Below, piece after piece: positions 2,526 to 42,110 of a stretch of 64,000 nucleotides of DNA. Below the pieces are notes generated by a model. It was not told where the DNA came from. It did no database searches and worked only from the letters and a program-made list of their open reading frames with translations. Origin of the DNA: Scyliorhinus canicula (taxonomy: Eukaryota); assembly GCF_902713615.1 (NCBI RefSeq), contig NC_052153.1, forward strand, positions 191,379,394-191,443,393, written 5' to 3'. The first letter of the stretch is position 1. The number at the start of each line of letters is the position of its first letter. A program made the position numbers and the translations under genes.

Positions 2526-3862
2526 AAAGGTTTGACACTGGAAGTTCCGAGGAACAAAGGGACCTTGGCGTGTTTGTCCGTAGATCTCTAAAGACAGATG
2601 GGGAGGTTAATAGGGTGGTGAAAAAGGGCATATGGGACACTTGCCTTTATCAATTGTGGCATTTTTACACGTACATAAAAAGCAAGAGGGTAGCCAGGGA
2701 AAGGGTTGGCCCACTAAAGGACAGGGGAGGGAATCTATGCATGGAGCCAGAGAAAATGGGCGAGGTACTAAATGAATACTTTGCATCAGTATTCACCAAA
2801 GAGAAGGAATTGGTGGATGTTGAGCCTGGAGAAGGGTGTGTAGATAGCCTGGGTCACATTGAGATCCAAAAAGACGAGTTGTTGGGCGTCTTGAAAAATA
2901 TCAAGGTGGATAGGTCCCCAGGGCCTGATGGGATCTACCCCAGAATACTGAAAGAGACAAGAAAGGAAATTGCTGAGGCCGTGACATCCTCACTGTCTTC
3001 AAGTGATGTCTCGGAGGACTGGAGAATAGCCAATGTTGTTCCTTTGTTTAAGAATGGTAGCAAGGATAATCCAGGGAACTACAGGCCGGTGAGCCTTACG
3101 TCAGTGGCAGGGAAATTACTGGAGAGAATTCTTGGAGACAGGATCTACTCCCATTTGGAAGCAAGTGGCCGTATTAGTGAGAGGCAGCACGGTTTTGTGA
3201 TGGGGAGGTCGTGTCTCACTAACTTGATAAGAGTCTTTTGAGGAGGTCATAAAGATGATTGATGCAGGTAGGGCAGTGGATGTTGGACTTCAGACAAGGT
3301 CCCTCATGGCAGATTGGTACAAAAGGTGAAGTCACACGGGATCAGGGATGTGCTGGCAAGGTGGATACAGAACTGGCTAGGTCATAGAAGGCAGAGAGTA
3401 GCAATGGTAGGGTGCTTTTCTGATTGGAGGGCTGTGACTAGTGGTGTTCCGCAGGGATCAGTGCTGGGACCTTTGCTGTTCATAGTATATATAAATGATT
3501 TAGAGGAAAATGTAACTGGTCTGATTAGTAAGTTTGCGGACCACACAAAGGTTGGTGGAATTGCGGATAGCGATGAGGACTATCAGAGGATACAGCAGGA
3601 TTTAGATAATTTGAAGACTTGGTCAGAGAGATGGCAGATGGAGTTTAATCCAGACAAATGTGAGGTAATGCATTTTGGAAGATCTAATACAGGTAGAGAA
3701 TATACAGTGAATGGTAGAACCCACAAGAGCATTGACAATCAGAGAGATCTAGGTGTACAGGTCCACAGGTCATTGAAAGGGGCAACACAGGTGGAGAAGT
3801 TAGTCAAGAAGGCATACGGCATGCCGGGGCATTGAGTATAAAAATTCGCAAGTCATGTTGCA
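2525..3862 (+). mobile_element. CR1 (HER1-like) LINE ORF2 fragment, degenerate
   Basis: [62 protein letters not shown]; frameshifted. Confidence 0.95.
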
Positions 3863-6464: not shown

Positions 6465-6779
6465 CTTTTAGGAAGGGAACCTATCTGCCCTCCTTCCCTG
6501 GTCTCCAGATCCACAGCTCTTAACTGCCCTCTGAAATGGCCGATCAGTTGAAGGGCAATTAGGGACGGGCAACGAATGCTGGCCCCGCCCAGGAGAGAAT
6601 AAAAAAAGACCTAAAAAAAGAGCGAAGGGAAATGAAAGATTTCCTTCTGAGAATAGATGGAGCTAATGAGAAGTCTCTGGGCTGCCGCACACTGCTGGGT
6701 GGTCCCAACAGAAGTAATTAACTTTAAGACTGATACGTCTTACAAGAGAATTCTTGGGAGAAGTAGGAAGCAAACCTGA

Positions 6780-6884
6780 GTGTATAATATATAAAGTTAC
6801 AAACTATATTGTGAAGTTCATAGTGCTTGTTTTATTTGTTGATGTAAAACAAAGTCACTTCTGTTCAAAGGAAACTGAAATCCC
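6780..6884 (+). promoter_or_regulatory. Candidate proximal promoter of the Ig receptor (TATA box, ISRE-like element)
   Basis: TATATAAA 6788-6795; GAAACTGAAA 6871-6880; AGGAAG and ACTTCTG ETS-like cores; ATG at 6885. Confidence 0.35.
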
Positions 6885-6999
6885 ATGACTTGGATCGGTC
6901 GAAACAAGATATTCAGATTTTTTTTTAATGTTGACATCCTCTCATCAGATTGCAAAATCACCCAGACACTGATCATTCTGTTGTTTGTCCTTTCCTCAG

Positions 7000-7353
7000 C
7001 TGCCGGTGGAAATGAGTCAGTGGTGAGTGGTACTGAGGGAGCTTCGGTTACATTGCCCTGTACGTTCATACCCAGTAACTCCCACACCCTGACCACTGTT
7101 AGCTGGATGAGGAAGGAGACCTATGAACGGGTGGTCACATTTACACCCCAGCCAAATGGATTGTGGACAACTGTAAACGGTGAAAATCGATACGAGCTCA
7201 TCGGGAACCTAAAGGAGGGAAACGCCTCAATCAGGATAAAGCAGCTGAGCGTGAATGATAATCTCACTTACGTGTGTCTGGTGGAGTACAAGGGGGAACG
7301 GTACCATTATCAAAACCTGATCCTGAATGAGACTCGGCTGCAGGTCACGCCTG
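7000..7353 (+). CDS. Ig V-set domain exon of a single-pass immune-type receptor (NCR3/NKp30-, CD300/TREM- or PILR-like architecture); 5' boundary may be 6949, or 6885 if the leader is in the same exon
   Basis: TLPC..VSW..NASIRI.QL..D..TYVC with 71 aa between Cys; acceptor TTTCCTCAG at 6991-6999; donor G|GTAAGA at 7354; phase 1 at both ends. Confidence 0.9.
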
Positions 7354-7434
7354 GTAAGAAATCAGCGTTGAGTTCCCAGCGAATCGAGGGTGTACACTGA
7401 GGGTGGGTGCTGTAACCGAAAACATTCATCCCCT

Positions 7435-7670
7435 CTGACTCAATTGCAGCATTCTTGCTGCTGAGTCAGTGGGCAATGGGTTCCAGTCCCACGCCAGGAT
7501 TTGAGCATAAATTCTACACTCCAGTGTAGTACTAAGGGAGTTGGAATTGCACCTTTCCAAAGTTTTATTAAACTGAGGCCATGCCTGTCCTCCCGGAAGC
7601 AAGCAGAAGATTCCATAGTACTATTTTGAAGAAAAGATATCCCTGGTGTTGTGGCCGATATTGACACATA
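7435..7670 (+). mobile_element. Old Deu-domain-type SINE (SacSINE1/AmnSINE-like), decayed
   Basis: CTGAGTCAG..GGGTTCCAGTCCCAC..AGTACTAAGGGAG..AAACTGAGGCC..AAGATTCCATAG..TTGAAGAA; similar to 59140-59820; family name from recall. Confidence 0.55.
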
Positions 7671-7789
7671 CGAACATATGAATCAGAAGCGGGAGTAGGC
7701 CACTCGACCCCTCGAGCCTGCTCCATTATTCAGTAAGATCATGGTGATCTGATTTTGGCCCTTTAGTCACCTTCCTGCCCACTCTAATA

Positions 7790-8015
7790 AATTTTTAAAT
7801 AAATTTAGAGTATCCAATTCATTTTTTCCAATTAAGGGGCAATTTAGTGTGACCAATCCACCTACCCTGCACATCTTTGGGTTGTGGGGGCGAAACCCAC
7901 GCAGACTCGGGGAGAATGTGCAAACTCCGCACGGACAGTGACCCGGGGCCAGGATCGAACCTGGAGCCTCGGCGCCGTGAGGCAACAATGCTAACCACTG
8001 CGCCACCGTGCTGCC
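7790..8015 (-). mobile_element. HE1-like SINE with short A-rich tail
   Basis: HE1 body; tail AATTGG(A)nTGAATTGGATACTCTAAATTT. Confidence 0.9.
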
Positions 8016-8329
8016 CCACTCTAATAACTCTGACTCCCTCGTTAGTCAAGAATCTATCGAAATTTGCCTTAGAAATATTCAATGATCCTGCCTCCACTTC
8101 TCTCTGAGGAAGACTCACAAAGAAAAGAATTCTCACCTCCGTTTTGAATGGGGGACTTTTTAAAGTTTATTTGGGGGATGTGGGCTTCGTTGCCCAGGCC
8201 AGCAATTATTTTCCATCCATTATTGGCCTTGAGAAGGCGGTAGTGAGCTGCCTTCTTGTGGTGTAGGTCCACCAACAATGCTGTTAGGGAGGGAGTGTCA
8301 GGATTTAGACCCTGTGACAGTGAAGGACA

Positions 8330-8790
8330 GTGGGCCGGTGACCAAGCTCTTCCTCGGAAAGGGGGTGCTTGCCAGAACCAGCTCTGGGGGCTCCGCCATC
8401 CCCTGGCGCTGCCAGTCCTGGAGGCCCACTCTCGTCTCGACCAGGGTCTCAATGCTTAGGGCCATGGAGCACAGGGACACGTCTCGGAGATGCTGGAAGG
8501 TGCGGATGATAGCAGTGACCTCCGACTTTCCCTCTCATGTACCTGCAACCATCAAATACCGTCCCCTGATCAGTTATCACCCTCTCCGCCCCGGAACCGG
8601 ACCCTTTATTAACGAAGATTGCCACCCGTCGAGCCCCACTATCAAAGCCCGAATGAAACACCTGGCTCACCCAGGCTTCCGGAGCCTAACCTGGCCCTGT
8701 ACCCGCAAATGGGTATCTTGTAAAAGCATCACGTTGGCACCCAAACTCTTTAAATGAGAGAAAAGCCTCGCCCTCTTTACAGGCCCCCCC
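8330..8790 (-). mobile_element. L1/Tx1-type endonuclease remnant
   Basis: SQVFHSGFDSGARRVAIFVNK in ORF 8449-8670. Confidence 0.65.
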
Positions 8791-8799
8791 TGGCCTCAC

Positions 8800-9920
8800 G
8801 CGTTCGCCTTGTCGGGGGCCTGTACATCCCTGGTCTTGTATTCTCGCCCTCTCGACATGAATGCTGACGTTGCATTTGCCTTCCTAACTGCCGACTGAAC
8901 CTGCACGTTCACCTTAAGAGAATCGTGAACAAGGACTCCCAAATCCCTTTGTGCTTCTGATTTCCCAAGCATCTTCCCATTTAGAAAATAGTCTCTGCCT
9001 CCATTTCTCCTTCCAAAGTGCATAACCTCACATTTTTCCACATTGTATTCCATCTGCCACTTCATTGCCCACTCTCCTCGCCCGTCCAAGTCCTTCCTCA
9101 ATACTTCCTGTCCCTCTGCAGATCTTTGCATCATCTGCAAACTTAGCAACAGTACCTTCAGTTCCTTCTTCCAGATCATTGATGTATATCGTGAAATGTT
9201 GTGGTCCCAACACCGACCCCTGAGGCACACCATTAGTCACCGGCTGCCACCCTGAAAAAGACCCCTTTATCCCCACTCTCTGCCTTCTGCCAGTCAGCCA
9301 ATCCTCTATCCATGCCAGGATCGTACCCTTTACACCATGGGCTCTTAATTTATTTAACAGTCTCCTATGCGGCACCTTGTCAAAGGTCTTCTGGAAATCT
9401 AAATAAATCACATCCACTGGTTCTCCTATGTCTAACTTCCTTGTTACCTCCTCAAAGAACTCTAAGAGATTTGTTAGACACGACCTCCCTTTGACAAAGC
9501 TGTGCTAACTCAGTCCTATTTTACCATGCACTTCCAAGTACTCTGTGATCTCATCTTTAATAATGGACTCTAAAATCTTACCAATGACCGAAGTCAGGCT
9601 AACCGGCCAATAATTTCCCGCCTTCTGCCTCCTTCCCTTCTTAAACAGCGGTGTTACATTAGCCACTTTCCAGACCTCTGGGACCCTCCCTGCCTCCGAT
9701 GATTCCTGAAATATCATCACCAATGCCTCCACAATTTCCTCAGCTATCTCTTTTAGGACCCTGGGGTGTAGTCCATACGGTCCAGGTGACGAATCCACCT
9801 TCAGACCTTTCAGTTTCCCCAGAACCTCCTCCTTAGTAATGGTCGCTGCACTCACCTCTGCCCCCTGGTTCTCCTGGAGCTCTGGCATCCCACTGGTGTT
9901 TTCCACCGTGAAGACTGATG
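8800..9920 (-). mobile_element. CR1 LINE ORF2 fragment
   Basis: [50 protein letters not shown]. Confidence 0.95.
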
Positions 9921-10018
9921 TTGGGGGTTTCCTTCCCGTGGCCTTCCTCGCCGAGGCTTTTGACAGTTCTCTGTCGATCATCTGTTGGCCATGCCAACCT
10001 GCTGGGTTGGAACACCAT

Positions 10019-10873
10019 GGGCGGGAGTCTCCAACCCCCTGCCGGCGATTCTCCATTCCCGGATGGGCATCCCCCACTCCCCCCTCCCCCGCCGATTCCC
10101 CACTCCCCAATGGGCAGCCCCCCCCCCCCCCCCCCCTGCCGATTCCCCACTCCCCGATGGGCATCCCCCCCCTCCCCTGCCGATTCCCCACTCCCCAATG
10201 GGCAGCCCCCCCCTCCCCTGCCGATTCCCCACTCCCCAATGGGCAGCCCCCCCCCCCCTGCCGATTCCCCACTCCCCAATGGGCAGCCCCCCCCCCTGCC
10301 GATTCCCCACTCCCCAATGGGCAGCCCCCCCCTCCCCTGCCGATTCCCCACTCCCCAATGGGCAGCCCCCCCCACTCTCCAATGGGCCAGGCGGCCGCCC
10401 GTTTTCGGCCAGTCCCGCCGGCATAGATTACACCAGGTCCGTACCAGCGGGACCTGGCTCTGGGGGCGGCCTGCTGAGTCCTCGGGGGGGGCGAGGGGGG
10501 ATCCGGCTCTGGGTGGGACCCCACGGTGGCCTGGCGCGCGATCGGGGCCCACCGATCTGCGGGCGGGCCTGTGCCGTGGGGGCACTCCTTCCTACCGCGC
10601 CGGCCTGTCTAAAGCTCCGCGGTGGCCGGCGCGGAGAAGAAACCCTCCGCGCATGCGCAGAAAATACGGCAGTGGTTCTGCGTGTGCGGCAGAACACGCT
10701 GGCGCTCCCACACATGCCCTTCAGTTGGCGTGGTGCCATCGACGCCGGCTCCGGCCTAGCCCCCGAAGGTGCAGAATCCTCCGCACCTTCCGGGTGGCCC
10801 GATGCCGGAGTGGTTCATGCCACTCTTTGGTGCCGGTACAGCCCACCCCGCCGGTTAGCGGAGAATCCCGGCC
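10019..10873. mobile_element. GC-rich TIR MITE with internal tandem expansion (~37-41 bp x ~8)
   Basis: GGGCGGGAGTCTCC ... GGAGAATCCCGGCC; repeats of CTGCCGATTCCCCACTCCCCAATGGGCAG(C)n; TSD not matching. Confidence 0.85.
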
Positions 10874-11136
10874 AAAACCTCCCGACAAACTGAGCAAAAG
10901 TCATCAAATTACAAGGACCTCTTGATTGCTCTCCATGTCATCACCAGAATCCCCTCACTATTTCCCATCTCTACCCAAACCATCATTAGCTAAGAACCAC
11001 CCGTCCACTTTGCCCTCGCTTCCTGTCCTTCCTAAATATCCTATGCCCTCTAATATTCAGGTCCCAGTCCATGTTCTCCTGCAGTCATGTTGCATAATGG
11101 CTATCAAATCGTGCTTATTTCAATGTTCGCTCTCTG

Positions 11137-11250
11137 CTGGTTTAGCACAGTGGGCTAAACAGCTGGCTTGTAAAGCAGACAAAGGCCAGCGGCGTGGGTT
11201 CAATTCCCGTACCAGCCGCCCCGAACAGGTGCCGGAATGCGGCGACCAGT
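11137..11250 (+). mobile_element. Family-B SINE, 3'-truncated
   Basis: GCTGGTTTAGCACAGTGGGCTAAACAGC..GGTTCAATTCCCGTACC. Confidence 0.85.
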
Positions 11251-11254
11251 AAAA

Positions 11255-11403
11255 AACAAATAAAACCAATAAAAAACAGACACACCCAAGCTTTTCTGAA
11301 AGTGAAACTAAAAAGCAGAGCCATAGCTCAGCTCCACCCACACTCTGACATCACTGCAGTAACATGAGCAGCCAAACATTTCTTAAAGCGAAATTCTCAT
11401 GAT
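11255..11403. mobile_element. Fragment of the LTR family seen at 52412-52990
   Basis: Shared CTGAAA.TGAAACTAAAA..CTCCACCCACACTCTGACATCACTG..CATGA(T/C)A. Confidence 0.65.
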
Positions 11404-12100
11404 AGTTCTACCCAGCTCGCAACGCCTCGCGAGATCCAAGGCAATTTCGTCAGATGTTGCGATATAAATCCTGCCCATTTTGGGCATATCAATGTGCGGA
11501 TTGCGGAGGTTCCTGAGGCTTTGAGAGTCAACCCTTTCACCTCAGGACCTTGGGTCCCACAAATGGGGACCAGACGGAACGGCACTCGTGGGGGTCTCCC
11601 AGGGGATTGAAGTCCCCCAGCTACATGCCCTTTGGGCAGGTTGGTAGCCTGGCACCCTGTCTGTGCCACTTTGGTGCCAAGGTGCCCAAGTAGCACTGCC
11701 AGCTGGCATGGCCACTGCCAGGTTGGCACTGTCAAGGCACCACGCTCGCATTTTTTGCACCCGCGCGATCGGGCCAGGGGTGACCTGCATGTGTGTTGGG
11801 GGGGTGTGCGGGCAGGCCTACTGTCGTGTGTTCGGGCTGGGGTGGGGTGAGGGCGGGTTAAGTTGGGGGTCACTTCAGGGGCCTCTGAGATCTCTCACTA
11901 CACTGGGGAGTTCCAGCCAGCGGAGCTTCCCACTGTACAGGGGTCTGTGGGGCCTTGACTGCACATTCCTCGTTCAGACCCCTTATACAGCGTGAGTCGC
12001 ATTGAATGGTCATGCCTTTCTTGGAACTACGAGCGCCGGGAAACATGCGGCTAAACGCGCTCCCGAGAGGACTTTGTTCCCATTTGGCTGAATCCAGCCC
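11404..12100. mobile_element. Second GC-rich TIR element family (left end lost)
   Basis: Ends GAATCCAGCCC like 36792-37410 but with a different interior. Confidence 0.55.
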
Positions 12101-12172
12101 TCTGACGATTGTCTGTATATTGTTGGTCTCTCACCTTTTGTCTCTGATTTGATCTCTTTCCTTTCTGTTCAG

Positions 12173-12272
12173 CTGCACAGCCCTTCCCCGTTGTGATACT
12201 GTGCATTCCACTTGGAGTGAAACTCCTTCCCCTGCTCGTGATGTGGATCATTTTATTGAGGGACAAAATCAG
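12173..12272 (+). CDS. Transmembrane exon of the Ig receptor: AAQPFPVVILCIPLGVKLLPLLVMWIILLRDKI(R)
   Basis: Long polypyrimidine acceptor ending CTGTTCAG (AG 12171-12172), phase 1 in; donor AG|GTATGG at 12273, phase 2 out; ~23 hydrophobic aa with central Lys followed by basic residues. Confidence 0.85.
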
Positions 12273-12361
12273 GTATGGAATTTTTACTGGGAGCCTTTGC
12301 AAAGCTCGATTCGCAGGTGACCCTTGGCCAGTGTGTCTTGGCAGGAGATTTGAACAGAGGT

Positions 12362-13019
12362 GCCACTCTGATTGAGCCGCACAGTGTGTGTCCAGCACAG
12401 GTCACTGGGCCACTCTGATTGAGCCGCACAGTGTGTATCCAGCAGGGGTCACTGGGCCACTCTGATTGAGCCGCACAGTGTGTGTCCAGCACAGGTCACT
12501 GGGCCACTCTGATTGAGCCGCACAGTGTGTATCCAGCACGGGTCACTGGGCCACTCTGATTGAGCCACACAGTGTGTGTCCAGCACAGGTCACTGGGCCA
12601 CTCTGATTGAGCCACACAGTGTGTGTCCAGCACAGGTCACTGGGCCACTCTGATTGAGCCGCACAGTGTGTGTCCAGCACAGGTCACTGGGCCACTCTGA
12701 TTGAGCCACACAGTGTGTGTCCAGCAGTGGTCACTGGGCCACTCTGATTGAGCCGCACAGTGTGTGTCCAGCACAGGTCACTGGGCCACTCTGATTGAGC
12801 CGCACAGTGTGTGTCCAGCAGGGGTCACTGGGCCACTCTGATTGAGCCGCACAGTGTGTGTCCAGCAGGGGTCACTGGGCCACTCTGATTGAGCCGCACA
12901 GTGTGTGTCCAGCAGAGGTCACTGGGCAACTCTGATTGAGCCGCACAGTGTGTGTCCAGCACAGGTCACTGGGCCACTCTGATTGAGCCGCACAGTGTGT
13001 GTCCAGCAGAGGTCACTGG
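12362..13019. repeat. 47-bp minisatellite, 14 copies (GCCACTCTGATTGAGCCGCACAGTGTGTGTCCAGCACAGGTCACTGG)
   Basis: CACTCTGATT at 12364, 12411 ... 12975 (13 x 47). Confidence 0.97.
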
Positions 13020-13605
13020 ATACAATGGGAGCAGGCACCCTGCTCAATGTTTAGTCTCCCTATCCCTGTCGCAGTTACACCAGCTCCTACTGCAGCCCAG
13101 TTGGGATTAGCTCAGACAGGGGATGGAAACCGGCCCATTCCTGGTCTGCACGATTCAGCTCCTCACAGCATGAACCGGCTGAGGTGTCACAGACCTGATT
13201 TAACACCCCCCCCCCCCCCCCCCCCCCCCAGGCCACCTCCATTCACAATGACGGTGTGCTGCAGTTTACACAGGGAGTCTGAGTCACCGTGACATTAATG
13301 TTTACATGCATGTGGTAACCTGCGTTTGTGGACAGTGATGGCGGAGGCTCCGATTTCTTGTCCTGGCTGATCAGGAATCTCCGCCGCCCTTATTGCCTGT
13401 CATTGGCGTGTGTTGGAAAGATTTAATAATCAACCTGTTTGGCCGTGTTATGAACACATCTTACTTGGCCACCAAGTCCTGGGGTGGGACACGTAAAGGA
13501 AATCCTGGCTCAGAGGCAGAGACGGTACCCACTCCGCCACAAGATCGTTCCACATTCGCTGGAGTCTACTTTAATCTGTAGGATATCTGCAGGAGATATT
13601 AGATT

Positions 13606-13849
13606 TGAGATACCTTCAATTACGACACAGGGGAGAAGATTGGTAATTCAAAGGCTTTAATTATTAGAGAACTGAACAGCAGCCGAGAAGTCTGCTCATT
13701 ACATGCTGCCGAGTGAGCCTCATCTTATATACCGTTTCCTGGGGGCGGAGCCAGAGGCGGAGTCCCCCAGAGTTCCAAGCCCGGTCTTAAAAGGCCAATG
13801 TATTAAAGGTAAGGTACAGTTACAGCAGCTACTGATACCATTCATCACA
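13606..13849 (-). mobile_element. 244-bp solo LTR, 5-bp TSD AGATT
   Basis: TG..CA termini; AGATT at 13601-13605 and 13850-13854; same-length copy at 57608-57851. Confidence 0.92.
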
Positions 13850-13879
13850 AGATTTAAATATGATTTAGTTCTATTTGAT

Positions 13880-14270
13880 TCCAGTGCTGGGTCCCTCGAC
13901 CACTGATGCACAGTAGCAGCCGTGTGTACCATCGACAAAATTCACAGCAGTAACTCACCAAAGTTCCTTCGGCAGCACCTTCCAAACCCACAATTTCTAC
14001 CATCTAGAAGGACAAGAGCAGAAGATACCTGGGAACCCCATCACCTGGAGGTTCCCCTCCAAGTCACTCACCTCCCTGACTGGGAAATATATCGGCCGTT
14101 CCTTCACTGTCGCTGGGTCAAAATCCTGGAACTCCCTCCCTAACAGCACAATGGGTGTACCTACACCATGTGGACTGCAGCGGTTCAAGAAGGCAGCTCA
14201 CCTCCACCTTCTGAAGGACATCTAGGGATGGGCAACGAACGCTGGCCTAGCCAGTGAAGCCAACATCCCA
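13880..14270 (+). mobile_element. 3' end of a CR1-clade LINE (family 2)
   Basis: GTGTGTACCATC..CAGCACCTTCCAAACCC..GTTCCCCTCCAAGTCAC..AGGGATGGGCAA; same as 22980-23340. Confidence 0.9.
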
Positions 14271-14948
14271 TAATTAATTTTAAATGAATAAATATTGGCA
14301 GTAAGTCTCCTGGAAATTTTCCAATCTAAGGTTTTTTTCCCATTTATTGTAGAATAACTAACCACTCGCCACAGCAGTGGGGAAAGGAATTGCACTCTGG
14401 GTAGTGGCTGCTGTTCAGACCGTGGCAATGAGGCTTTCACAGTCTCGTGAAGTCTTGCTGTGCCCTCTGACCAAGCTTTTGCTCACCCGTCCTAATATCT
14501 CCTGTGTCAGGTTTTGTCTGTTATGGTCTTGGGACGTTTTGCTACATGGAAGGTGTGATTATATAAACACAAGTTTTTGTTACTCGTGTCAAAATCACGA
14601 GGTAGAAAATCCTCCCTTTTGGGCTGCGTTCTCCTGTCCTACAGGCAGCGTAGGGGCTTGGAGGTGGAGGGGGGCTGGGTGTGAGGGGAAACTGCCTGAG
14701 GACATCTTCCCACCACATTCCTTAAACGGGGGACGTTTCCCATGGATGGCCTGGGAAGCTGATCCATCGACAGGTGCCTGGAGGCAATTAGAGGCGAATG
14801 CTTGGGCCTGTTGGGATTTTGCCGGTGACGGAACAGATGCCCCCCCACTCGTGGAGGCTGCCAGCTCAGTGGTGGTGGTCTCAGTACAGCAACCTGGAGG
14901 ATCCATCAGAACCGGCGATCTGTGCCCGGTGAAGGCCCACCGGCCTAG

Positions 14949-15238
14949 TGATGAACCATCAATCGAACGCGAGACGAGTTGCTGTACAAAAGAAAGTTAG
15001 GCTTTAATAAGCTAGAAGTTAGCCCTGCGGTCGACTACAGTAAATGGACGACCGCCGGGCATTCTGGGTATTTATACCTCGCTCTGGAGGCGGGGTTAAC
15101 TCAGCCGTTCAACCATTCGGAGAGCCGTCACATGACTGGTCTCAACCAATCGGTCGAGAGGCACATGACCGACCGGGGCCAATGGTAAGCCAGTGTTCTG
15201 CACCAATGGCAGACAGCTATGCAAATCATACCACCATA
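14949..15238 (-). mobile_element. 290-bp solo LTR, 5-bp TSD CCTAG
   Basis: CCTAG at 14944-14948 and 15239-15243; starts TG, ends TA (likely decayed CA); TATA and CCAAT motifs. Confidence 0.8.
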
Positions 15239-15671
15239 CCTAGTCTATCTCAAACCTTCAGCAATGTGCCTCAGCATCCTCGTGACTGAGCAGCACTCAC
15301 CTGTTTAAGGCTCCAGATCTGCCAACTCTCTGACTGGGCCGGTTACATTGAGAACCAGCATGGTGTCCTTAATCAGACAACGAACGCAGAGGCAGCCAGT
15401 TAGGATGCTGCCTTCTGGATGATTGCTCCGCCCATCTGTCTCCCGGCGAGTGAGAATTCAGGATCCTATTTGGTATTACACTGGGGAACGGAAGACCATT
15501 CGAAAATCCTGCCCACTCGGTTAATATTTAACACAAGTACCAATGATTAGATCTGTTTTTAAATGTGTGAGGAATCCTATTTAAACAGGTGCTTGTTGTA
15601 TCTGGAGGTGTTGAAAATGTTATCTTACTGTTAATTTGGCTCATTTTAATTGATCTTGTCTTTATTCCCAG

Positions 15672-15798
15672 GAAGGATCAGGCTGAGGAAGAACCCAGGA
15701 AGGACCGACCCATCGCAGGAAGAGAAGAACCCAAATATATAAACTGCAACATAAACCTATCCCACTCGCCCCGCACAGAATCTCACCCAGCAGTTTAA
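15672..15798 (+). CDS. Terminal cytoplasmic exon of the Ig receptor: (R)KDQAEEEPRKDRPIAGREEPKYINCNINLSHSPRTESHPAV*
   Basis: Acceptor TCTTGTCTTTATTCCCAG (AG 15670-15671), phase 2 matches the TM exon; stop TAA 15796-15798. Confidence 0.75.
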
Positions 15799-15949
15799 AC
15801 TGGGCTTGCTTTAATCATCCTTCACTGTGAGATCCTGGGTTCAGCAAAATTCTTCCTGTTAATCAGCTAGTCGGCAATGTTCTACATCACACTGTGGTGA
15901 TCTTATAGTCTTGATGGGACTGTGTAAATGTGCGATTGTGAATCAACAC

Positions 15950-16318
15950 GGCAGCACGGTAGCACAGTGGCCAGCACAGTTGATTCACAGTTCAAGGGCC
16001 CCAGTTTCGATTCCCGGCTTGTGTCACTGTCTGCGTGGAGTCTGCATGTTCTCCCCGTGACAGCATGGGTATCCCCACAGGGGGCTAAACAGCTGGTTTG
16101 TAAAGCAGACCAAGGCCAGCAGCGCGGGTTCAATTCCCGTACCGGCCTCCCCGAGCCGGTGCCGGAATGTGGCGACTGGGGGCTTTTCACAGTAACTTCA
16201 TTTGAAGCCTCCTTCAAGCCTGTTCGGGGAGGCTGGTACGGGAATTGAACCGTGCTGCTGGCCTGCCTGGGTCTACTTTAAAAGCCAGCGATTTAGCCCA
16301 GTGTGCTAAACCAGCCTC
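15950..16318. mobile_element. SINE cluster: HE1 head (+), family-B SINE (+), family-B SINE (-)
   Basis: HE1 15950-16080; B+ 16081-16205; B- 16215-16318. Confidence 0.85.
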
Positions 16319-17336
16319 TTATCTAACAGCCTGATTAAAATTTCAGCCATTGGCTGGAATTGAAATAACAAGAGATAAAACCAGCTGTGGATTGACCGTT
16401 TTACACTATCACATTCAGTCCAAATGACCCCTATCCTCAGAATTGAATGTGAATTTGAGTTTTCTCAGTAAAAGTCTGTATAAACACTCCGGCTCGCTCC
16501 ATAAGGTACTAGTAGGAGAGCTCATGCGGCAGAGGTGACTGTGAGTGGGACAGGTTTAACCCTGATTATTCCAGGTGCTCTGTCCAGGGGACTGGCTGCT
16601 GTTCCCAACTCCTCGGCTGTGTTGGGGGAGATACTGCTGTAGGTCAGCCAGCTTTCCATAACCCACCCCAGAGTGAACCTCTGCTTTTCATTGTCGGTCT
16701 ATCTAAGTTGCACGATGGAGCTGCAATGATTGTAAACAATGCAACCAATAAACAATTGTTTGTGACTGAACATTGACTCCTCCTTAGCATCAACGTGCAC
16801 TCCATATCACACCGCCGTGCGGAATCGAGTGAGGCCATTCAGCCCATCGTATCTGTGTCAGCTCTATGAAAGAGTTATCCAATTAATCTTATTCCTGTGT
16901 TTTCTCCTTATTTCCCTGAAAAATCTTCCCTTTCAAGCAGTTATCCAATTTCAGGCAGTGCATTGCCGATCATAACTCACTGCGTGAAAGATGCCCACTC
17001 TTCCTCAGGTCGGGCAGCATCCCTGGAGTAAAGAACAGCAGTTTACTATTGAATCTTTCAGACTGCAGCATCATCACTCACTGTTTGAAACATGTTTCCT
17101 TCAGCTGCCCCGTGTTCTGTTTATCGTTAACCTGTGTCCTCCAGTTATCCAATCTCTCTGGCAGCAGACACTTAATGAATAACCTCAGGATGTGGGTTTC
17201 CTTGGTAAAACGGGCATTTATAATAATAATCTTTTATTGTCACAAGTAGGCTTACATTAACACTGCAATGAAGTTACTGTGAAAAGCCCCTAGACGTCAC
17301 ACACTCCGGCGCATGCGTGGACTTCCGTCCAAAAGT

Positions 17337-23929: not shown

Positions 23930-26900
23930 CCATAGAACATAGAACATAGAACATAGAACACTACAGCGCAGTACGGGCCCTTCGGCCCTCGATGTTGCGC
24001 CGACCTGTGAAACCATCTGAAGCCTATCTGACCTACACTATTCCATTTTCATCCATATGTCTATCCAGTGACCACTTAAATGCCCTTAAAGTTGGCGAGT
24101 CTACTACTGTTGCAGGCAGGGCGTTCCACACCCCTACTACTCTCTGAGTAAAGAAACTGCCTCTGATATCTGTCCTATATCTATCACCCCTCAATTTAAA
24201 GCTATGTCCCCTCGTGTTGGTCATCACCATCCGAGGAAAAAGACTCTCACTGTCCACCCTATCTAACCCTCTGACTATCTTATATGTCTCTATTAAGTCA
24301 CCTCTCAGCCTTCTTCTCTCTAACGAAAACAACCTCAATTCCCTAAGCCTTTCCTCGTAAGACCTTCCCTCCATACCAGGCAACATCCTAGTAAATCTCC
24401 TCTGAACCCTTTCCAAAGCTTCCACATCCTTCCTATAATGTGGTGACCAGAACTGCACGCAGTACTCCAGGTGCGACCGCACCAGAGTTATGTACAGCTG
24501 CAGCATGACCTTGTGGCTCCGAAACTCAATCCCCCTGCTTATAAAGGCTAGCACACCATATGCCTTCTTAACAGCCCTATTAACCTGGGTGGCAACTTTC
24601 AGGGATTTATGTACCTGGATGCCGAGATCTCTCTGTTCATCTACACTACCAAGAATCTTGCCATTAGCCCAGTACTCTGCATTCCTGTTACTCCTTCCAA
24701 AGTGAACCACCTCACACTTTTCCACATTAAACTCCATCTGCCACCTCTCAGCCCAGCTCTGCAGCTTATCTATGTCCCTCTGTACCATAAGAACATAAGA
24801 ACATAAGAACTAGGAGCAGGAGTAGGCCATCTGGCCCCTCGAGCCTGCTCCGCCATTCAATTAGATCATGGCTGATCTTTTGTGGACTCAGCTCCACTTT
24901 CCGGCCCGAACACCATAACCCTTAATCCCTTTATTCTTCAAAAAACTATCTATCTTTACCTTAAAACATGTAATGAAGGAGCCTCAACTGCTTCACTGGG
25001 CAAGGAATTCCATAGATTCACAACCCTTTGGGTGAAGAAGTTCCTCCTAAACTCAGTCCTAAATCTATTTCCCCTTATTTTGAGGCTATGCCCCCTAGTT
25101 CTGCTGTCACCTGCCAATGGAAACAACCTGCCCGCATCTATCCTATCTATTCCCTTCATAATTTTAAATGTTTCTATAAGATCCCCCCTCATCCTTCTAA
25201 ATTCCAATGAGTACAGTCCCAGTCTACTCAACCTCTCCTCATAATCCAACCCCTTCAGCTCTGGGATTAACCTAGTGAATCTCCTCTGCACACCCTCCAG
25301 CGCCAGTACGTCCTTTCTCAAGTAAGGAGACCAAAACTGAACACAATACTCCAGGTGTGGCCGCACTAACACCTTATACAATTGCAACATAACCTCCCTA
25401 GTCTTAAACTCCATCCCTCTAGCAATGAAGGACAAAATTCCATTTGCCTTCTTAACATCCTTAACATCCTTCAACACTATCCACAACTCCACCGACCTTC
25501 GTGTCATCTGCAAATTTACTAACCCATCCTTCTACACCCTCTTCCAGGTCATTTATAAAAATGACAAACAGCAGTGGCCCCAAAACAGATCCTTGCGGTA
25601 CACCACTAGTAACTGAACTCCAGGATGAACATTTGCCATCAACCACCACCCTCTGTCTTCTTTCAGCTAGCCAATTACTGATCCAAACCGATAATCACCT
25701 TCAATTCCATACTTCCTTATTTTCTGCAATAGCCTACCGTGGGGAACCTTATCAAACGCCTTACTGAAATCCATATACACCACATCAACAGCTTTACCCT
25801 GATCCACCTGTTTGGTCACCTTCTCAAAAAACTCAATAAGGTTTATGAGGCATGACCTACCCTTCACAAAACCGTGTTGACTATCGCTAATCAACTTGTT
25901 CTTTTCAAGATGATTATAAACCCTATCTCTTATAACCTTTTCCAACATTTTACCCACAACCGAAGTAAGGCTCACAGGTCTATAATTACCAGGGTTGTCT
26001 CTACTCCCCTTCTTGAACAAGGGGACAACATTTGCTATCCTCCAGTCTTCCGGCACTATTCCTGTCGACAAAGACGACATAAAGATCAAGGACAAAGGCT
26101 CTGCAATCTCCTCCCTGGCTTCCCAGAGAATCCTAGGATAAATCCCATCTGGCCCAGGGGACTTATCTATTTTGACATTTTCCAAAATTGCTAACACCTC
26201 CTCCTTTTGAACCTCAATTCCATCTAGCCTGGTCGACTGAACCTGAGTGTTCTCCTCGACAACATTGTCTTTCTCCAGTGTAAACACTGACGAAAAATAT
26301 CCATTTAACGCTTCCCCTATCTCCTCTGATTCCACACACAACTTTCCACTACTATCCTTGATTGGCCCTAATCTTACTCTAGTCATTCTTTTGTTCCTGA
26401 TATACCTATAGAAAGCCTTAGGGTTTTCCTTGATCCTATCCGCCAACGACTTTTCGTGTCCTCTCCTCGCTCTTCTTAACTCTCCCTTTAGGTCCTTCCT
26501 GGCTAACTTGTAACTCTCAAGTGCCCTAACTGAGCCTTCATGTCTCATCCTAACATAAGCCTTCTTCTTCCTCTTGACAAGTGCTTCAACTTCCTTAGTA
26601 AACCACGGTTCCCTTGCTCGACAACTTCCTCCCTGCCTGACAGGTACATACTTATCAAGGACACGCAGTAGCTGTTCCTTGAAAAAGCTCCACATTTCGA
26701 TTGTACCCATCCCCTGCAGTTTCCTTCCCCATCCTATACATCCTAAATCTTGCCGAATAGCATCATAATTGCCTTTCCCCCAGCTATAATTCTTGCCTTG
26801 CGGTATATACCTATCCCTGCCCATTGCTAAAGTAAACATAACCGAGTTGTGATCACTATCACCAAAGTGCTCACCTACATCTAAATCTAACACCTGGCCC

Positions 26901-27020
26901 GGTTCATTACCCAGTACCAAATCCAATGTGGCCTCGCCCCTTGTTGGCCTGTCTACATACTGTGTCAGAAAACCCTCCTGCACACACTGCACAAAAACTG
27001 ACCCATCTATAGTACTCGTA
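23930..27020 (-). mobile_element. Young CR1 (HER1-like) LINE, 5'-truncated, split by a second CR1
   Basis: Open 441-aa ORF 25667-26992 (end of endonuclease to RT) and 251-aa C-terminal ORF 24033-24788; (TTCTATG)n tail at ~23930. Confidence 0.95.
24786..25450 (-). mobile_element. Second CR1 subfamily 3' fragment nested in the above
   Basis: Own (TTCTTATG)n tail at 24786-24810; second copy of RPHLEYCVQFWSP..RFTRLIP. Confidence 0.9.
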
Positions 27021-39545: not shown

Positions 39546-42110
39546 GCAAGAACATAGAAAATACAGCACAGAACAGGCCCTTCAGCCCACAATGTTGTGC
39601 CAAACTTTTGTCCTAGATTAAGAACAAATCAATCTACACCCCAACATTCTACCGTAATCCTACCTATCCAATAGCCGCTTGAATGTCCCTCATGTTTCTG
39701 ACTCAACTACTTCCACAGGCAGTGCATTCCATGCCCCCAATACTCTCTGGGTAAAGAACCTACCTCTGACATCCCCCCCTATATCTTCCACCATTCACCT
39801 TAAATTTATGTCCCCTTGTAATGGTTTGTTCTACCCGGGGAAAAAGTCTCTGACTGTCTACTCTATCTATTCCCCTGATCATCTTATAAACCTCTACTAA
39901 GTCGCCCCTCATCCTTCTCCGTTCTAATGAGAAAAGGCCTACCACCCTCAACCTTTCCTCGTACGACCTACTCTCCATTCCAGGCAACATCCTGGTAAAT
40001 CTCCTTTGCACCTTTTCCAAAGCTTCCATATCCTTCCTAAAATGAGGCGACCAGAACTGTACACATTACTCCAAATGTGGCCTTACCAAGGTTTTGTACA
40101 GCTGCATCACCACCTCATGGCTCTTAAATTCAATCCCTCTGCTAATGAACGCCAGCACACCGAAGGCCTTCTTCACAGCTCTATCCACTTGAATGGCAAC
40201 TTTCAAAGATCTATGAACATAGACCCCAAGATCTCTCTGCTCCTTTACATTGCCAAGAACCCTACCGTTAACCCTGTATTCCGCATTCATATTTGTCCTT
40301 CCAAAATGGACAACCTCACACTTGTCAGGGTTAAACTCCATCTGCCACTTCTCAGCCCAGCTCTGCATCCTATCTATGTCTCTTTGCAGCCAACAAGGTT
40401 TTGTACAGCTGCATCATCACCTCACAACTCTTAAATTCAATCTCTCTGCTCAGAAATCCTATCCCTCAGTACCCTTTCCATTACTTTGCCTGCCACCGAA
40501 GTAAGACTAACTGGCCTGTAATTCCCAGGGTTTTCCCCACAGGCGCACGGCATTCACCACACTCTAATCCCCTGGTATCACCCCTGTTGATAGTGAGGAC
40601 GAAAAGATCATTGCCAAAGGCTCTGTAATTTCATCTCTTGCTTCCCATAGAATCTTTGGATATATCCCATCAGGCCCGGGGGACTTGTCTATCCTCAAGT
40701 TTTTCAAAATGCCCAACACATCTTCCTTCCTACCAAGTATCTCCTCGAGCTTACCAGTCTGTTTCACACTGTCCTCTCCAACAATATGGTCCCTCTCATT
40801 CATAAATACTGAAGAAAGGTACTCGTTCAAGACCTCTCCTATCTCTTCAGGCTCAATACACAATCTCCCGCTACTCTCCTTGATCGGACCTACCTTCGCT
40901 CGAGTCAATCTCATATTTCTCACATATGTGTAAAAGGCCTTGGGGTTTTCCTTGATCCTACCTGCCAAAGATTTTTCATGTCCTCTCTTCGCTCTCCTAA
41001 TCCCTTTCTTCAGTTCCCTCCTGGCTATCTTATATCCCTCCAGCGCCCTGTCTGAACCTTGTTACCTCAGCCTGACATAAGTCGCCTTCTTCCTCTTAAC
41101 AAGACATCCAACCTCTCTTGTCAACCATGGTTCCCTCACTCGACCATCTCTTCCCTGCCTGACAGGGACATACATATCAAGGACATGTAGTATCTGTTCC
41201 TTGAACAAGTTCCACATTTCACTTGAGTCCTTTCCTGACAGCCTATGTTCCCAATTTATGCACTTCAGTTCTTGTCTGACAGCATTGTATTTACCCTTCC
41301 CCCAATTATAAACCTTGCCCTGTTGCACGCACCTATCCCTCTCCATTATTAAAGTGAAAGTCACAGAATTGTGGTCATTATCTCCAGAATGCTCCCCCAC
41401 TAACAAATCTATCACTTGCCCTGGTTCATTACCAAGTACCAAATCCAATATGGCCTCCCCTCTGGTCAGACAATACTGTGTTAGAAAAGCTTCCTGGACA
41501 CACTGCACAAACACCACCCCATCCAAACTATTTGATCTAAAGAGTTTCCACTCAATATTTGGGAAGTTGAAGTCACCCATAACTACTACCCTGTGACTTC
41601 TGCACCTTTCAAAAATCTGTTTCCCAATCTGTTCCTCCACATCTCTGCTGCTATTGGGGGGCCTATAGGAAACGTCCAACAAGGTGACTGCTCCTTTCCT
41701 ATTTCTGACTTCAACCCATATTACCTCAGTAGGCAGATCCTCCTCGAACTGTCTTTCTGCAGCTGTTATACTATCTCTAATTAACAATGCCACCCCCCCC
41801 CCCCCCCACCTCTCTTAACACCCTCCCTAATCTTATTGAAACATCTATAACCAGGGACCTCCAACAACCATTTCTGCCCCTCTTCTATCCAAGTTTCCAT
41901 GATGGCCGCCTGATCGTAGTCCCAAGTACCGATCCATGCCTTAAGTTCACCCACCTTATTCCTGATGCTTTTTGCGTTGAAGTATATATACTTAAACCCA
42001 TCTCTGTGCCTGCAAGTACTCTCCTTTGTCGGTGTTACCTTCCCCACTGCCTCACTACATTCTTTGACGTCCTGAACATCGGCTACCTTAGTTGCTGGAC
42101 TACAAATCCG
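39545..42110 (-). mobile_element. CR1 LINE (endonuclease, partial RT and 3' end; internal deletion)
   Basis: IYFNAKSIRNK, VVMGDFNFPNI, AILDLVL.NEP, DKSPGPDGIYP, RRFTRMLPG; (TTCTATG)n-type tail. Confidence 0.93.

Follow-up and report, generated by a model that had tools for sequence, protein, structure and literature searches.

What kind of receptor gene lies among the repeats near the start of this 64,000-nucleotide stretch of the Scyliorhinus canicula genome (contig NC_052153.1; hereafter the window, with positions counted from its first letter)? A preliminary description, made from the sequence without database searches, proposed three exons for an immune-type receptor in which only a leader precedes a single variable-type (V) immunoglobulin (Ig) domain, followed by a transmembrane (TM) segment with a lysine and a cytoplasmic tail with a YxN motif. 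The three exons are real, transcribed and spliced as proposed. Very probably, they are the last three coding exons of LOC119970765, which belongs to a Siglec-15-related family of two-Ig receptors in sharks and rays, and whose product would be an activating type I membrane glycoprotein. The gene would be a new, Siglec-15-related member of the paired Ig receptors.

Joining positions 7000–7353, 12173–12272 and 15672–15798 gives a single open frame that runs for 192 codons to a stop, with exon phases 1/1, 1/2 and 2/stop and AG|..|GT edges. A pyrimidine-rich AG acceptor precedes each of the three exons, and a GT donor is present wherever one is expected. As RNA evidence, we used Logan contigs of public S. 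canicula runs (runs X1, X2, X4 and X5), aligned to 6500–12400 and 12100–17000; such contigs can merge paralogues that are about 90% alike. The first joint (7352/3 to 12172/3, skipping 4,819 nucleotides (nt), GT..AG) is carried by contigs of runs X1, X2 and X4, which represent three studies, and the second (12272 to 15672, skipping 3,399 nt, GT..AG; cut +3) by contigs of all four runs. A single 806-nt contig of run X1 comprises 7032–7352, 12172–12273 and 15669–16055 with eight differing letters, and all three exons therefore lie on one assembled transcript. Both junctions put forward in the preliminary description (7353/12173 and 12272/15672), together with its frame, phases and splice sites, are in this way confirmed by RNA, in three and four runs, respectively. 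Downstream of the stop codon, contigs end in the 3′ untranslated region (UTR) at 16055 (runs X1 and X2) and 16091 (run X4), and the first + strand AATAAA past the coding end is at 16747.

The RNA also bears on what precedes the V exon. None of the four runs shows any depth at 6697–6893, and the contigs that arrive from upstream join the V exon at 6998–7000; the ATG at 6885, the mechanical start of the open reading frame (ORF), was rejected as the start codon because of this lack of depth. Contigs entering the V exon carry upstream letters that are absent from the window (105 in run X2, 106 in X4 and 271 in X5). When translated in the frame of the V exon, the upstream end of the X4 contig reads ..VPQGTDLIVN|A, which is the G strand of another Ig domain, so the V exon is not preceded by a leader only. 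The 30-letter upstream end of this contig has no match in the window at up to three mismatches.

In a BLASTP search against all fetched sequences, the spliced product of 192 residues was 100% identical to residues 126–317 of XP_038661843.1 (P0198), recorded as "uncharacterized protein LOC119970765" of S. canicula. The gene itself is already a RefSeq model, and the match removes the novelty supposed for it while leaving the gene standing. What survives of the suggestion of an undescribed receptor concerns the family: full-text literature searches on shark Siglec-15-like and paired receptors found no paper on this elasmobranch family. Isoform X1 of the gene, XP_038661842.1 (P0242; 347 residues), consists of a signal peptide, a first V-type domain (V1), a second (V2), a TM segment and a tail, and the V exon of the window encodes the second of the two domains. 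The gene range (17,767 bp, on a 200-Mb chromosome) is longer than the distance from 7000 to the transcript end, and tblastn with P0242 finds only residues 155–347 in the window; this places the leader and V1 before the start of the window. Likewise, tblastn with full-length P0242, P0243, P0182, P0237, P0238 and P0160 matched only the three exons, with no leader or V1 exon in the window, and no paralogues or exons encoding an immunoreceptor tyrosine-based inhibitory motif (ITIM) were found elsewhere in the 64 kb. With the V exon as query, a full HMMER search returned 437 relatives, 17 of them below 1e-30, and the best named relatives are elasmobranch RefSeq models labelled "uncharacterized", "Siglec-15", "pIgR-like" and "JAML-like". 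The features of the gene in the window are listed in Table 1.

Table 1. Features of LOC119970765 in the window.
Feature	Position	Strand	Remarks
V2 exon (Ig domain 2, membrane-proximal V-set)	7000..7353	+	phase 1/1; residues 156-272 of XP_038661842.1 (P0242)
Intron, 4,819 nt, GT..AG, repeat-filled	7354..12172	+	elements like short interspersed elements (SINE-like), reverse-transcriptase fragment of a long interspersed element (LINE), Gly/Pro-rich low-complexity stretch
Stalk + TM exon	12173..12272	+	phase 1/2; encodes AQPFPVVILCIPLGVKLLPLLVMWIILLRDKI(R); Lys codon AAA 12220-12222 = K289 of P0242
Intron, 3,399 nt, GT..AG	12273..15671	+	RNA joint in runs X1, X2, X4, X5
Cytoplasmic tail exon, coding part	15672..15798	+	encodes KDQAEEEPRKDRPIAGREEPKYINCNINLSHSPRTESHPAV; TAA stop 15796-15798; 100% match to P0242 residues 306-347
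3′ UTR, as far as single RNA contigs reach	15799..16055	+	continues into SINE-like repeat

The V-set hallmarks read from the sequence in the preliminary description are present in V2, which matches the Pfam V-set family PF07686 (5.1e-16; 59.3 bits against a cut-off of 26). It has Cys20 and Cys92, separated by 71 residues, as well as Trp35, the F-strand YVC and four sequons (NES, NAS, NLT and NET), and the FGxG motif is absent from it. Lys134 of the spliced product lies centrally in the most hydrophobic 21-residue segment; the TM lysine, the activating-type layout and the assignment to an elasmobranch V-set receptor gene all held. In an AlphaFold2 model built from a 40-sequence family alignment (predicted local distance difference test score, 79; predicted template-modelling score, 0.70), two nine-strand V-type Ig domains are followed by a helix at 279–311 that contains Lys289, and the strands A′BCC′C″DEFG of V2 occupy 161–271. 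Domain 2 is V-set by both profile and model, and both domains are V-type folds. Two-V-domain proteins took the first ranks in a Foldseek search against the PDB, namely JAML (1e-15), pIgR and single-chain variable fragments. V2 is distantly like V1 (27%, 9e-9); it has Leu at the position of the Arg site of V1, lacks the extra Cys pair of V1 and contains only two Cys. Among solved structures, the top sequence matches of V2 were TIM-2 and TIM-1. Since TIM domains have a six-Cys pattern, V2 has two Cys only and far more identical relatives exist, the TIM family was rejected. Matches to CD276/B7-H3, VSIG4 and CD4 were set aside as generic V-set similarity only.

The view that the gene cannot be assigned to a named family was too strong, since V1 and the TM segment tie it to Siglec-15. 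The best solved relative of V1 (P0242 residues 20–155) is human Siglec-15 (7zoz_A, E=4.3e-12). All four Cys are aligned, LPCRFTHP falls on LPCTFTHP, FRC on FRC, and YHCCVEL on YFCRVEF. The last of these motifs contains, on the F strand, the essential Arg of Siglecs, which in V1 of LOC119970765 is a Cys. The aligned Arg is at chain position 124, which we take to be R143 on the assumption that the 7zoz construct begins after the signal peptide; R143 of human Siglec-15 is the residue needed for sialic-acid binding. The Arg is kept at this site in the paralogues LOC119970764 (P0182) and LOC119970771 (P0243) and in the sister protein of S. torazame (P0181), which read YHCRVEL or YRCRVEL. As for the TM segment, CIPLGVKLLPLLVM resembles LVPLGIKLLILLVM of a bird Siglec-15 model (P0238), and the stretch PLGVKLLPLLVM was compared with the bird TM sequence PLGIKLLILLVM. 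This bird segment matches the window with E=0.035 and is the only other part of that protein to do so; no match in the window was obtained by tblastn with the C2 domain of either bird or coelacanth Siglec-15.

In a V1 tree, obtained by a quick search and with long branches flagged, the elasmobranch family forms one clade (98 by the Shimodaira–Hasegawa-like approximate likelihood ratio test) apart from the coelacanth, bird and caecilian Siglec-15. A sawfish model, P0237, is sister to and outside this clade, on a long branch. It has V1, a V2-type domain (37% identical to the catshark V2, 2e-18) and then a Siglec-15-type C2 domain, a layout that suggests, from the sequences, a possible route to the V-V form. 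Domain number is modular in the family, as some of P0160–P0164 (Hemiscyllium, Chiloscyllium, Heptranchias and Stegostoma models of 540–654 residues) repeat the unit as V1-V2-V1-V2. We also observed that two caecilian "Siglec-15" models (P0240 and P0241) are V-C2 proteins with an uncharged TM segment and tails containing CTYADIQF and EVTYA(A/T)V, as in the shark inhibitory forms described below. An ITIM-type Siglec-15 relative may be ancient, and the CTYADI/VTYAAV tails of the caecilians hint at a paired state of the Siglec-15 lineage as far back as the early jawed vertebrates.

The family alignment contains two classes that share one ectodomain type; both occur in about 20 elasmobranch species, and the family spans sharks and rays. 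Class 1 has IPLG(V/L)K(L/T)L in the TM segment and a tail of 10–50 residues, and the TM Lys is present in every short-tailed form aligned. In class 2, the TM segment is uncharged and the long tail carries motifs that fit the ITIM pattern: (D/S)SCTYA(E/S)(I/L) and, at the C-terminus, (V/I)(T/I)YAAV. The ITIM-bearing partners that the preliminary description predicted do exist: V2 of the paralogue LOC119970771 (P0243) is 91% and V1 79% identical to that of LOC119970765, and its tail carries SCTYAEI, SCMYASV, SCTYASV and VVYAAV. In the V1 tree, LOC119970765 is sister to S. torazame P0181 (support 89), with LOC119970764 next, and activating and inhibitory forms cluster by lineage, not by class, as would be expected from birth-and-death evolution or gene conversion in a paired cluster.

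The two classes also differ at the Arg site. The Arg is kept in 29 of 30 ITIM forms versus 13 of 23 TM-Lys forms, which is a lead only, as the test (Fisher p = 5e-4) covers the models fetched, counts isoforms and ignores kinship. The 10 TM-Lys members that have lost it carry C, G, H, K, S or Y instead, and their frames are open. In mammalian paired Siglecs, ectodomains stay similar within a lineage, and activating members tend to lose the sialic-acid Arg. We put forward only tentatively, as a conjecture that may well fail, that the elasmobranch family descends from a Siglec-15-like ancestor with a V-V ectodomain and paired members, that its activating members repeatedly lose the Arg (10/23) while the inhibitory ones keep it (29/30), and that this independently replays the arms race of the mammalian paired Siglecs, with LOC119970765 as a fresh case. 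On such a reading, activating copies may shift from self sialic acid to other, perhaps pathogen, ligands.

For LOC119970765, we propose that the product would be the activating, adaptor-coupled (DAP12-type) partner in a paired receptor system, set against inhibitory paralogues whose ectodomains are nearly the same. DAP12 binding by human Siglec-15 requires its Lys274 (PMC6941304). By analogy, Lys289 in the TM segment would pair with the Asp of a DAP12-type adaptor bearing an immunoreceptor tyrosine-based activation motif, and ligand engagement would then activate the cell. Canonical sialic-acid binding has presumably been lost, because the Arg of V1 is gone. A literature search on DAP12 in cartilaginous fish returned cartilage papers only, and no DAP12 sequence search was made.

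The tail is poorly conserved. The YxN motif (KYINCN), which had been regarded as a feature of the receptor, is confined to the two activating paralogues of S. canicula; S. torazame carries Cys in place of its Tyr, and many homologues terminate before the YxN position, at ..AGS. The Heterodontus and Heptranchias models read the tail in the frame of an alternative acceptor (..RTDPSQEAEKLNVQTAI). Because different species read the tail in either frame, a conserved signalling motif in it is unlikely, which fits signalling through an adaptor. In S. canicula, a minor alternative acceptor was seen at 15676, 4 nt downstream of 15672, in run X4 only (depth 6 versus 126); it shifts the tail frame to ..RTDPSQEEKNPNI*.

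Some points weigh against the assignment and the role proposed above. The V1-V2 joint of LOC119970765 rests on the RefSeq model and a two-letter match ("AG") in runs X2 and X5. The X4 contig joins to the V2 exon a different V1-like end (..VPQGTDLIVN), which is more like the V1 end of LOC119970771 than that of LOC119970765. The sequence of V1, including its Arg>Cys change, comes from the RefSeq protein; the window does not encode this domain. Finally, the extra unpaired Cys in V1 is a possible sign of a decaying copy.

This last point leads to the alternative that survives best, although we regard it as improbable: LOC119970765 may be a ligand-dead activating copy, still transcribed and spliced, whose function was lost with the Arg>Cys change and which is becoming a pseudogene. 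Such decay would account for YHCCVEL in place of the YHCRVEL or YRCRVEL of the paralogues and the S. torazame sister, with an unpaired Cys added, for the amino-acid-changing variants in the RNA contigs (L70P, Y101D, K>N and E>G), and for the greater divergence of V1 than of V2 from the paralogues. However, the frame is intact in all exons, the splice sites are canonical and transcripts occur in several studies. Moreover, the 10 of 23 TM-Lys members of other species that also lack the Arg have open frames, which looks more like recurrent ligand change than like decay.

It is very unlikely that LOC119970765 is the true Siglec-15 orthologue of the catshark, acts in osteoclasts or myeloid cells and binds sialyl-Tn-type glycans. 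RefSeq does name many family members "Siglec-15", and V1 and the TM segment are the most Siglec-15-like parts, but domain 2 is V-set instead of C2-set and the essential Arg is gone. In addition, the gene belongs to a multigene expansion with ITIM forms, which stands apart from the coelacanth, bird and caecilian Siglec-15, and the sawfish P0237, which keeps the Siglec-15-type C2 domain, branches outside the elasmobranch clade, albeit on a long branch.

The single-V receptor of the preliminary description, an NKp30-like activating receptor composed of a leader, V domain, TM segment and tail, has next to nothing left in its favour. The three window exons alone would encode V-TM-tail, and a Mustelus RefSeq model (P0004, 183 residues) has only a V2-type domain and a TM segment; the latter, however, has an odd N-terminus without a signal peptide and is probably a truncated model. 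V1 precedes the V2 exon in both RefSeq isoforms of LOC119970765, full-length homologues in about 20 species are V1-V2, and the contigs at 6998–7000 carry 105–271 upstream letters, one of which ends in an Ig G strand. NCR3 (NKp30) shares a V-set domain, a charged TM residue and a short tail with the catshark gene, but it has one V domain versus two, is not among the best 60 solved relatives of V2 and has no detectable specific sequence similarity, so the comparison of exon layouts does not apply.

Equally implausible is a JAML-like adhesion or co-stimulatory molecule that signals without an adaptor through its own tail, as JAML does, by way of a Grb2-type YxN site: JAML (3mj6/3mj7/3mj9) is a type I membrane protein with a tandem V-set pair and the best structural match (Foldseek E ~1e-15), and the catshark tail contains KYINCN, but identity to JAML is 17% with nothing to support common descent beyond the Ig fold, the Tyr is replaced by Cys in S. 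torazame, most homologues terminate upstream of it or are translated in the other frame, and the TM Lys is kept in every short-tailed form aligned.

The contigs also showed sequence variation relative to the reference. L70P (CTA>CCA, window 7210) occurs in contigs of runs X2, X4 and X5 and returns V2 to the family consensus GNP, and Y101D (TAC>GAC, window 7302), in the F-G loop of V2, occurs in those of X1, X2 and X4. At these sites, the reference allele is possibly the minor one, or the contigs mix paralogues. A 754-nt contig of run X5 (12173–15925) contains the TM and tail exons together with about 390 upstream letters that found no place on the V2 exon at a likeness of 95%; the paralogue LOC119970764 is a possible source, as is a different upstream exon.

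Short repeats at 7682–8075, 11031–11424, 13904–14231 and 16036–16363, in the introns and the 3′ UTR, have a summed contig depth of 10^4–10^5 across all four RNA runs and look like SINE-type elements transcribed from many loci. Within the 4,819-nt intron, a G+C-rich low-complexity region (9505–10925) contains long overlapping ORFs on both strands (GEWGIGRGGGG / PLPIPHSPMG repeats) without a Pfam match. In fragments of retrotransposons lacking long terminal repeats, at 2570–3835, 25667–26992 and 41062–41793, Pfam recognises RVT_1 reverse transcriptase and an endonuclease domain. The long ORFs of 16–64 kb showed neither a further Ig exon nor a cellular gene. AATAAA occurs 84 times in the whole window versus 25.6 expected from shuffles, probably owing to A-rich repeat tails.

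How, then, does the catshark gene compare with known receptor systems? Skate MDIR are likewise multigene, modular Ig receptors of a cartilaginous fish with activating and inhibitory forms (Cannon et al. 2006, as summarised in PMC3031540), but their domains are described there as CD300/TREM/pIgR-like. No MDIR-named protein was present among the 90 matches to the skate query P0018, in a search limited by word sharing and length. Siglec-15 (7zoz; bird P0238) shares with the catshark gene the N-terminal V-set domain with the same four Cys and the LPCTFTHP and YxCRVE motifs, a central TM Lys in a PLGxKLLxLLVM context, a total of two Ig domains and, as we infer, DAP12 signalling. Unlike the catshark gene, Siglec-15 has a C2-set second domain; the catshark gene has a V-set domain there and a Cys at the equivalent of R143, and it belongs to a multigene, lineage-specific family with ITIM partners and is not a one-to-one orthologue. 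The family would link Siglec-15, which tetrapods keep as a single conserved gene, to a large elasmobranch system of paired activating and inhibitory receptors. With the mammalian paired Siglecs (Siglec-5/14 and Siglec-11/16), the catshark family shares the coexistence of activating genes with a charged TM segment and ITIM genes with near-identical ectodomains; in contrast to them, it has an elasmobranch host and a V-V ectodomain, and would derive independently from a Siglec-15-like ancestor, not from CD33-related Siglecs. Its natural pairs of Arg-present and Arg-lost receptors would provide material on whether, as in mammals, the activating receptors of cartilaginous fish evade binding to self ligands.

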